A DNA stretch of 64,000 nucleotides, taken from assembly GCA_021613535.1 (NCBI GenBank), contig CP075497.1, forward strand, positions 3,658,001 to 3,722,000, read 5' to 3'. Under the pieces are notes generated by a model, which saw only the letters and a program-made list of their open reading frames with translations, did no database searches and was not told the DNA's origin. Each line of letters opens with the position of its first letter. The first letter of the stretch is position 1. The translations under genes and the position numbers were made by a program. Below are positions 55,321 to 57,471 of this stretch, piece after piece. This DNA is from Adineta vaga (taxonomy: Eukaryota; Animalia; Rotifera).

Positions 55321-57471
55321 CTATTGTGTATTATAATTTGCTTCATTTTGCCAATGATCAGGATGTTCTTGATACCATTTAATTGTCATACGAATACCAT
55401 CATCAAATTTAACTTCTTGTTTCCAACCTAAACTTTCTAATGCATCAGTCATGACAGAGTATCGACAATCATTAAAATAACGATCTTTAACATGGATTAT
55501 TGAATCTTCAACTTTTGCGTCTGGTTTCATAAGTTTTAAAAGAATACTAGCAATTTCCATAACTTTAATTTCATCTTTTGAACCAATATTATAAATCATT
55601 TTTGGTTTACCTTTACGAAGAACAAAATCCACGGCACGAACTGTATCGCTAACATAAATAAAATTTCGAACTTGTTTACCATCACCATGTATTGTCATCT
55701 TTTCATTTGCCATAATTGTTGTTATAAAACGTGGAATAACTTTTTCCGTGAATTGATACGGACCATAAACATTATTACCACGTGTTATTACGTATGGTAA
55801 TTTAAAACTTTCACCATATGATTTCACAAGAAATTCAGCAGCTGCCTTTGTAGCTGCATATGGATTTGTTGGATTAAGTACAGCTGTTTCATGACAACTA
55901 CCTATATAATATATATATCGAAGAATAAGCTTATTATTTATCTTAATTGAAAATATTCATCTGTACCTGCTGGCCACTCTCCGTAAACTTCATCAGTACT
56001 AATATGAATAAATTTTCGAAGTTTATTATAACTTCGACTTGCTTCCAATAAACAATGTGTACCAAATATATTTGATTCAGTAAAAAGTATGCTATTACCA
56101 AATGATGTATCAACATGAGTTTGTGCTACATAAGAAAAATAAGGTTAAATTGAAAGAAGTAATTTTAATAAAATCTTTACCAGCAAAATGAACAACATGA
56201 GTAATATCATATTGTTTCATTAAATGTAACATTAAATCTTTATTATTAATACTTGCTACAACTAATTTATATTTAGGTGAATTAGGTTCTTCAATATTTC
56301 CAATATTTGAACATGTATCAAGTTTATCAACATTGACCACGGAATCTTCTGGATATGTTCTTAACCAATGATTAACAAAATTACTTCCAATAAATCCACA
56401 ACCACCAGTAACAAGTAATCGTCGTGTTTCAGCCGATTCTTGATTATTAGCTGATTTAATATTTGCTCGATGAATACATATGGTTTCAATACTTTTCTTA
56501 ATATCTGGTAATGAATGTGGTGTATAATAAAGTTTACGTGTATCAGGTGATAATAATTTCATCCATTGTTCAAGTTTTTCTGAAGATAAAACATTATTTG
56601 AACGACGTGCAGCTAATCGAGCATTTTGATCTTCAACAGGTTCCAATTCATAATCAAGAACTTCACCTGTTTTTTCTTGATAAATTTTAAGAATCCAATC
56701 ATGATCAACCCTATACGAAGAGAAAACAAATTGATTGAAATAGAATATTTTTCATATTCACCATCCTTTATTGCATGCATTAACACGACCGCCAAGTTTA
56801 CCATCATGTGTTAATGCTAAAAGTATAGGTAATATATCTGACATGACTGTCATGCTATTTGGTAACGATGTGATCTTTTTGTAAGCAAGAATTTTTGTAA
56901 TAAAATCTCTTGAATTTGGCTCATCCGATATTGGCATACGAATACGAGCACTAAAATATCAGTTGCTATATGAAATAAATAGATATTGAACATCCTACTT
57001 GATCACATGTGGATATGCGTCAATTAATAAGTCAGTTGCACCTTTAACAGTTGAATAAGCAGAACCACAAAAGTTTGGTAAATCATTTTCAGTAAATGGA
57101 TGACTTAAATCGTTTGAGTCGGCATATTCATAAATACAGCCTGTACCAATATAAAGTGTAGGAATTGGTGCAGCTAATTTTGAATATTGCATTGATGCTT
57201 GTGCAATAAACATTGGTGCTAAAAGATTATCACGAATATTATCTTTCAGTTTGCCTGGTTTTTCTAAATAATCAATATTGGGTATGCCTTCACCGTGCGT
57301 ACGACCAAGTGAACATATAATACGATCAGGTTTATATGTGAGAATATCCTCTTCCACATCTTTTAAAGATGTAATACGTCGACCTGAAACTACTTTTTGA
57401 CCAGCAACATTAAGTAATTCTCGACATTGTCCACCAATCCACCCTGCCGAACCATATATTAACCAGAGCAT
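55321..57471 (-). CDS. Fused NDP-L-rhamnose synthase: N-terminal 3,5-epimerase/4-reductase (NRS/ER type) plus C-terminal NDP-glucose 4,6-dehydratase, 5 coding exons
   Basis: ER domain: [65 protein letters not shown] and RRSNNVL. Dehydratase domain: [46 protein letters not shown] and [15 protein letters not shown]. Both domains share one exon (~56711-56181) with no stop between them. Confidence 0.92.

Follow-up and report, generated by a model that had tools for sequence, protein, structure and literature searches.

A UDP-L-rhamnose synthase candidate of bdelloid rotifers with reversed domain order and giant-virus-type relatives

The bdelloid rotifer Adineta vaga has a gene that unites two modules of the short-chain dehydrogenase/reductase (SDR) type in one reading frame. 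A nucleotide-sugar 3,5-epimerase/4-reductase (ER) comes first and a nucleotide-sugar 4,6-dehydratase (DH) follows. The gene is located on the minus strand at 57471-55321 of a 64,000-nt stretch of contig CP075497.1 (assembly GCA_021613535.1, positions 3,658,001 to 3,722,000), referred to here as the window. It is a member of a bdelloid gene group, paralogue A, which probably encodes one polypeptide of about 73 kDa for all three steps of UDP-L-rhamnose formation, in the reverse of the order of the plant rhamnose synthases (RHM) and with an origin among virus-type genes.

Gene model and transcript

Three-frame translation of the minus strand yielded five coding pieces; the four GT-AG introns between them measure 48, 51, 55 and 65 nt. 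The joined coding sequence (CDS) has 1932 nt, that is, 643 codons plus the stop codon. ER occupies amino acids 1-300, the linker has about 20 amino acids and DH extends from about 323 to 637. Exon 1 (56999..57471) encodes amino acids 1-157 plus 2 nt, with the ER motifs GSAGWIG, GTGC and YSTVK. Intron 1 (56951..56998) is followed by exon 2 (56762..56950), which continues ER from RIRMPIS to FITK, and by intron 2 (56711..56761). Exon 3 (56181..56710) is the junction exon: ER ends at about 56473, the linker covers about 56472-56407, and the Rossmann start of the dehydratase begins at about 56406. Because the linker lies inside exon 3, both domains are joined within one exon without a stop codon between them. 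After intron 3 (56126..56180), exon 4 (55967..56125) encodes the dehydratase from HFAAQTHVD to STDEVYGE. Intron 4 (55902..55966) precedes exon 5 (55321..55901), which encodes YAATK and the C-terminal substrate-binding half and ends with the stop codon (55323-55321). An earlier note, made from the letters of the window, had proposed one spliced frame with four introns and had quoted a linker; the frame was exact, and the linker is present in exon 3.

Read contigs were compared with positions 55100-57700 of the window (2601 letters). Contigs from two different studies, X1 (1441 nt) and X5 (1790 nt), have all four introns removed at the predicted sites. The joints read 56950/56999, 56709/56761, 56125/56181 and 55898/55964; the last three skip 51, 55 and 65 nt. 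On the plus strand the skipped segments begin with CT and end with AC, equivalent to GT..AG in the direction of the gene. The X5 contig spans 57476 to 55513. A single spliced mRNA, as expected in the earlier note, and not a pair of transcripts bridges both modules. Contigs of a DNA-type run (X16) retained introns 1-3 unspliced, and the listed pieces break inside intron 4.

Contigs of three runs (X1, X5 and X6) leave the genome at 57476 with an identical loose end. They share a 5' extension that was not found in the window. Its reverse complement ends with GGCTTATTACAACTTACCAAG, followed by an AG shared with the genome. This AG (57475..57476, minus strand) is a candidate acceptor for spliced-leader (SL) trans-splicing and leaves a 5' untranslated region of 3 nt (AAT, 57474-57472) before the ATG. 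The extension presumably matches the 23-nt bdelloid spliced leader and is read as this leader, that is, as SL trans-splicing. Bdelloids share a 23-nt SL, described in a paper that does not print its letters (PMC1925144).

The joined model aligned gap-free and end-to-end with independently annotated bdelloid proteins. Identities were 93.6% with A. ricciae, 90.0% with A. steineri, 89.7% with Rotaria sp., about 87% with R. socialis and R. magnacalcarata and 78% with Didymodactylos. A 2193-nt contig of another run (L001) codes for an uninterrupted orthologue of 644 amino acids with 84% identity. The joined model was used for identity tables and trees, and the database queries were single exons or the natural orthologues P0152 and P0171, the latter being the A. 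ricciae protein.

Epimerase/reductase and dehydratase modules

The identity of the ER half was established by PDB sequence and fold searches. Exon 1 matched the UDP-L-rhamnose synthase L780 of mimivirus (PDB:7JID) at 4.2e-35 with about 50% identical amino acids, and more weakly NRS/ER of Arabidopsis (PDB:4QQR) at 9.2e-14. The values for exon 2 were 3.9e-12 and 2.2e-10, respectively. The ER half is thus homologous to NRS/ER, yet much closer to the viral enzyme. It has a Rossmann motif (GSAGWIG, amino acids 7-13), Cys112 in GTGC, Tyr139 and Lys143 in YSTVK and Lys177 in FITK. Cys112 aligns opposite L780 Cys108 and Lys177 opposite L780 Lys175. The catalytic roles of L780 and R141 residues, including Cys108 and Lys175 for epimerisation, have been described (PMC9614988). 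Homology and fold, the Cys/Lys pair, YxxxK and GxxGxxG place the module in the L780/UGER type. Pfam and NCBIfam models gave no match on exons 1-2 and on P0171:1-310, even at E = 10.

The DH half is recognised by family models. Exons 3, 4 and 5 matched TIGR01181 at 64, 54 and 208 bits (207.7 before rounding for exon 5). P0171 scored 363.4 bits with positions 1-319 of the 321-position profile aligned, 1.7 bits under the curated equivalog cut-off of 365.1. Mimivirus R141 (PDB:6VLO) was the best solved structure for exon 4 (1.3e-17) and exon 5 (5.7e-42); where the dehydratase begins in exon 3, 6BI4 (5.4e-14) was slightly ahead of 6VLO (2.4e-13). GGxGxxG is present as TGGCGFIGS (from amino acid 322), the Thr-Asp-Glu triad as STDEVYG (from 440) and YxxxK as PYAATK (from 464). 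The catalytic residues are Thr441, Asp442, Glu443, Tyr465 and Lys469. The string STDEVYGE is identical in exon 4 and R141, in which Asp125 and Glu126 are catalytic (PMC9614988). PF04321 and TIGR01214 (rmlD) gave weak matches inside the DH half. The protein has no cupin domain and does not correspond to the bacterial and nematode Rml pathway with its separate RmlC and RmlD.

The closest stand-alone dehydratases share 52-62% identity with the DH half. They are mostly unnamed and include viral-metagenome and protist-transcriptome (EukProt/MMETSP) entries. Metazoan TGDS is homologous to the DH half within the SDR dehydratase family; it has about 350 amino acids and stands alone, without an ER partner. 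The best 120 DH-domain matches contained no named metazoan TGDS.

An AlphaFold model of P0171, built with a 42-sequence alignment, had a mean pLDDT (predicted local distance difference test) of 89.2. It shows two complete Rossmann-type domains with a long helix between them. Foldseek superimposed the model with R141 at a TM (template modelling) score of 0.91-0.92 and 46-47% identity, and with L780 at 0.92-0.93 and 40% identity. Among solved structures, these two mimivirus enzymes match best in both sequence and fold, and the catalytic residues are identical. Conservation across paralogue A, the tardigrade proteins and those viral-type proteins that are shown covers Cys112, Lys177, Tyr139/Lys143, both Rossmann motifs, Thr-Asp-Glu 441-443 and Tyr465/Lys469. 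None of the 42 alignment rows departs from Thr-Asp-Glu or from Tyr465. Exon alignments with solved structures and the residue checks thus bear out the claim that both SDR modules are complete with intact motifs.

Distribution of the domain order

Plant RHM1, RHM2 and RHM3 likewise hold two SDR modules in one chain and catalyse three reactions: 4,6-dehydration, 3,5-epimerisation and 4-reduction. Their dehydratase is N-terminal. The rotifer protein has the reverse order, as the earlier note had stated, a linker of only about 20 amino acids and viral-type relatives. The architecture is classed as a circularly reordered RHM-type synthase.

The junction exon was searched with HMMER against 1.84 billion representatives. 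Proteins of 598-704 amino acids matched across the junction, at their residues about 220-400. A full-length search with P0152 found many proteins of the same order at 97-99% coverage. Among them are the bdelloid paralogue A (about 640 amino acids) in every bdelloid genus sampled (Adineta, Rotaria and Didymodactylos), a bdelloid paralogue B (584-599 amino acids) that includes UJR38245.1 of A. vaga, and three tardigrade proteins, two in Paramacrobiotus metropolitanus and one in Ramazzottius varieornatus. The tardigrade genes have ER-DH architecture and introns. Bdelloid orthologues occur in at least six assemblies, on contigs of up to 4.7 Mb. Many unnamed metagenomic proteins of about 610-630 amino acids were also listed, and more than 100 metagenomic proteins have this order. 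Full-length relatives of the same order share 45-55% identity. The architecture is not rare, and the earlier idea of an independent fusion in this animal had to be given up.

Domain parsing of the collected set, which is biased by the query, gave 106 ER-DH, 27 DH-ER, 9 DH-ER-ER, 99 DH-only and 7 ER-only proteins. Six proteins of 963-1000 amino acids (P0244, P0247, P0199, P0201, P0206 and P0211) are triple-domain DH-ER-ER proteins; a green-algal one, from Cymbomonas, has the name rhm1-like. Apart from bdelloids and tardigrades, no named cellular eukaryote with the same-order fusion was among the best 120 full-length matches. In prokaryotic species-representative genomes the best full-length matches (Omnitrophota, Metabacillus) reached only 30-33% identity, and a prokaryotic donor was rejected on this basis. 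The matches in Omnitrophota metagenome-assembled genomes and Metabacillus malikii (L088, L089 and L118) have the same order over the full length and are possibly RmlD-RmlB-type fusions.

The proteins are already public in databases under a partial, automatic name. Because Pfam and NCBIfam detect the dehydratase half alone, each ER-DH copy is labelled as a dehydratase only ("dTDP-D-glucose 4,6-dehydratase"). No description of the ER-then-DH architecture or of its presence in giant viruses was found in the literature library searched, which is incomplete. A preprint surveying rhamnose pathways counts Ugd-Uger fusions in 111 genomes and is silent on domain order; a paper on horizontal gene transfer to tunicates concerns a mutarotase only. 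The order is common, one half of what the earlier note had feared for the novelty of its proposal; for the other half, a previous description, no paper was found.

Relatives in giant viruses

In mimivirus, R141 (UGD) and L780 (UGER) form a two-step UDP-rhamnose pathway from two separate genes. The rotifer and many uncultured nucleocytoplasmic large DNA viruses (NCLDV) have a fused ER-DH gene instead. The statement of the earlier note that giant viruses encode the modules separately thus holds for mimivirus and fails for many uncultured NCLDV. The viral fusions (P0193 on L084, P0175 on L002, P0180 on L003, and the IMG/VR contigs L004 and L005) have the same architecture with about 610-630 amino acids and 45-55% full-length identity. 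These uncharacterised proteins have only automatic names; their genes are without introns and have capsid, transcription and glycosylation genes as neighbours.

On the 92-kb contig L084, the fusion is 2.7 kb from an NCLDV major capsid protein gene. Nearby genes code for Rpb2, an Erv1-type oxidase, thymidine kinase, dUTPase, glycosyltransferases, a DegT aminotransferase and a hexapeptide transferase. The encoded protein P0193 is 82% identical to P0191, a member of the group nearest to the bdelloids. The region L084:14516-21848 combines the fused synthase near the capsid gene with a sugar cluster (GT25, GT17, DegT aminotransferase, hexapeptide transferase) that resembles the viosamine/rhamnose gene set of mimivirus. 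Contigs L002, L003 and L085 are dense, intronless and ORFan-rich with giant-virus-like gene content; jointly they carry GIY-YIG, an RFC-like ATPase, thymidine kinase, Ras, ATG8, PI3K and a split Rpb2. Contigs L085 and L086 hold ER-DH relatives near the bdelloid clade and have GC contents of 63% and 74%; L085 has the split Rpb2 and a helicase. Fused copies were also present on IMG/VR viral contigs, one of them a giant-virus metagenome-assembled genome. In the ESM Atlas, "Viruses" make up 83-96% of the nearest clusters, for the most part Nucleocytoviricota. These contigs and clusters, together with the tree below, substantiate a foreign, giant-virus-type relationship, one of the donor types that the earlier note had considered.

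Phylogeny and origin

Profile hidden Markov models were used to cut out ER and DH segments, which were then joined in a uniform order for every fused protein. The careful maximum-likelihood tree had 40 rows and 617 columns (LG+C20+F+G4) and is unrooted. Near-duplicates above 70% identity, the long-branch protein P0138, most DH-ER and distant ER-DH groups and P0173, which is without part of the ER half, were left out. A wider quick tree of 69 rows served as a guide only.

The bdelloid sequences, those of paralogue A as well as B, group in a single clade (100/99). A branch with 97/98 support unites this clade with virus-type ER-DH proteins, including the lineages of P0175 and P0191. The tardigrades (100/100) and the L003 group are on the other side of this branch. 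In the wider tree the domain order switches several times; in the well-supported group with all animal genes, every member is ER-DH. As the bdelloid copies are nested among virus-type ER-DH sequences, the fusion predates its arrival in the animal, and the gene most likely arrived already fused. Giant viruses and tardigrades carry the same fused gene, which argues for a captured viral-type gene rather than an invention of this animal.

The proposed course starts with an already fused gene that would have entered the bdelloid lineage before Adineta, Rotaria and Didymodactylos diverged. As the source we propose a giant virus (Nucleocytoviricota) or an organism with access to the same gene pool. 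After entry, the gene would have gained host-type introns, AT-rich codons and SL trans-splicing, followed by a duplication after which paralogue B lost catalytic residues.

The donor may have been a protist or bacterium, with giant viruses taking the fused gene separately from such hosts as members of a shared pool. The unrooted tree permits this reading, and protist-transcriptome entries stand beside viral-metagenome entries among the closest stand-alone dehydratases. Both domain orders are interleaved in the tree, which indicates frequent rearrangement or exchange, and two near relatives are located on high-GC contigs of ambiguous origin. Conversely, all contigs inspected from the nearest ER-DH groups have a viral appearance, and the nearest Atlas clusters are predominantly viral. 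The best 120 matches offered no other named cellular eukaryote with the fusion in this order, and the full-length matches in prokaryotic genomes are distant. A cellular donor is therefore unlikely.

Predicted function

The mechanism proposed here for the captured gene follows the established chemistry of R141/RmlB and L780/NRS-ER. The C-terminal module would be NAD+-dependent and convert UDP-glucose, possibly dTDP-glucose, into UDP-4-keto-6-deoxyglucose. The bound NAD+ would oxidise C4, water would be eliminated across C5-C6 by Asp/Glu, and the hydride would return to C6. The N-terminal module would epimerise C3 and C5 with the Cys/Lys pair and then reduce C4 with NADPH and Tyr/Lys, yielding UDP-beta-L-rhamnose. 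The domain order would be irrelevant to the chemistry, and the fusion may favour the hand-over of the labile intermediate. From the sequence we infer UDP-rhamnose as the product, the matching substrate, and a use in rhamnosylated glycans with partner transferases. Specificity for UDP is suggested by related enzymes of viruses and plants; these accept dTDP-sugars as well (PMC9614988).

Another product or substrate of the active protein would be dTDP-L-rhamnose, another UDP-6-deoxyhexose such as 6-deoxy-L-talose, or the 4-keto intermediate for a different pathway. R141 and L780 accept both UDP- and dTDP-sugars (PMC9614988), the stereochemistry of an SDR 4-reductase is not legible from motifs alone, and the viral fusion loci also hold aminotransferase and acetyltransferase genes using the 4-keto intermediate. 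This is improbable in view of the identity of about 50% between exon 1 and L780, a proven UDP-L-rhamnose synthase, the preserved counterparts of Cys108/Lys175 and the close superposition with 7JID.

Paralogue B (P0259, P0006, P0235, P0240 and P0265) is encoded outside the window and occurs as a conserved protein in Adineta and Rotaria. The Rossmann glycines are gone from its ER half, YxxxK is without its Tyr and Lys, and a deletion of about 30 amino acids has removed the Cys strand; the FITK lysine is lost in most members. In the DH half, Ile or Val replaces the YxxxK lysine. Judged by these residues, paralogue B is probably not an enzyme of the rhamnose pathway and would be a pseudoenzyme or a protein with a new function. 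The residue loss in paralogue B supports paralogue A, the gene in the window, as the working copy.

Among the long open reading frames (ORFs) tested in 43.9-59.3 kb of the window, none coded for a glycosyltransferase. In A. ricciae, the gene model P0283 (967 amino acids) merges the synthase (98.8% identical to P0171) with a protein of 325 amino acids. The merging places the gene of P0285 directly downstream of the synthase in A. ricciae. P0285, a nucleotide-diphospho-sugar transferase domain protein by its UniRef name, may be a partner transferase. Pfam finds nothing in P0285, and the window has no homologue of it.

Genomic context and inheritance

The composition of the CDS is that of its surroundings. 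The GC content at third codon positions (GC3) is 0.13, compared with 0.13-0.20 in neighbouring ORFs, in a window of 30% GC. Three minus-strand features served as composition controls: an intronless gene for an F-box protein of 346 amino acids (47945-48985), an exon with a borderline thioredoxin-domain match that is PDI-like by eye (50216-50575) and a TPR protein (43895-44536). The F-box, thioredoxin-fold and TPR matches are ordinary eukaryote-type domains. Rfam gave no match anywhere in the window. The segment 28001-30000 has a GC of 0.43 against a background of about 0.30. Non-metazoan nearest relatives combined with introns, an SL-like 5' end, host GC3 and such neighbours characterise a horizontally acquired and domesticated gene. 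Domestication had been put forward earlier from introns and codon bias; the host-size introns and the GC3 value agree with it, and the presumed SL trans-splicing adds a further host feature.

Vertical inheritance would require an ancient ER-DH gene, metazoan or eukaryotic, of which bdelloids and tardigrades are the only animals to have kept a copy. In favour of this scenario, two distant animal phyla have this architecture together with introns. A tree with bdelloids and tardigrades constrained together was 15.5 log-likelihood units worse and was rejected by the approximately unbiased (AU) test (p-AU 0.007). The 97/98 branch separates both groups, with virus-type sequences between them. No other named animal appeared in the best 120 full-length matches, and no named TGDS in the best 120 DH-domain matches. 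Vertical inheritance is very improbable. The simplest reading is that the bdelloid genera would have inherited the fusion from a common ancestor and that the tardigrades obtained theirs separately.

Bdelloid assemblies are known to require contamination checks, yet an artefact, either contaminant DNA or two adjacent genes misread as one, is hardly credible and as far as sequence data reach already refuted by four host-size spliceosomal introns, host GC3, the SL-like 5' end of the mRNA, the joining of both domains inside one exon without a stop, single contigs that bridge both domains in two studies, orthologues in at least six bdelloid assemblies on contigs of up to 4.7 Mb, and ordinary eukaryote-type ORFs in the same window.

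Several points weigh against a virus-derived UDP-L-rhamnose synthase in bdelloids. Unsampled eukaryotes may have been the source from which viruses obtained the gene; since the tree is unrooted, we can only infer the virus-to-animal direction. Most metagenomic relatives have no taxonomic label and few contigs were inspected, and the origin of the two near relatives on contigs with 63-74% GC is ambiguous. The absence from monogononts and other animals has as its sole basis that none was among the best 120 full-length matches. The group rejected by the AU test is a natural hypothesis, yet it was tested after the first tree had been seen. The RNA origin of the X1 and X5 contigs is deduced from the removal of the introns, as the kind of run is listed as 'RNA?'. 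The preference for UDP or dTDP is beyond what a sequence can tell, and neither an enzyme assay nor a rhamnose measurement in bdelloids was located in the literature.

Significance for animal rhamnose metabolism

To our knowledge, rhamnose is regarded as almost absent from animals, and the Rml route of nematodes is the only described synthesis of rhamnose nucleotides in animals. Nematode RML-1 to RML-4 are separate enzymes of the bacterial Rml type with a cupin RmlC epimerase and dTDP-sugars; they have no NRS/ER module and no fusion. Nematode rml-3 is likewise of horizontal origin (PMC10473587). As far as the incomplete library was searched, rhamnose-nucleotide synthesis has not been reported for bdelloids or tardigrades.

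A more far-reaching proposal is tentative and rather doubtful: bdelloids and tardigrades, two unrelated groups of minute animals that tolerate desiccation, may each have captured an ER-DH synthase from giant viruses independently and use it to supply UDP-L-rhamnose for their own glycans, and bdelloids may keep the conserved dead paralogue for a new, perhaps regulatory, role.

The permuted RHM architecture is common in databases and hidden from annotation. The significance of the finding is moderate and consists of a testable rhamnose prediction and a likely virus-linked gene capture. The genes are a case of animal genes with nearest relatives in giant viruses, a route far less documented than that from bacterium to animal. 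The fused synthase leads us to expect rhamnosylated glycans in two additional phyla of animals and, if true, would represent a second, virus-derived rhamnose route in animals.

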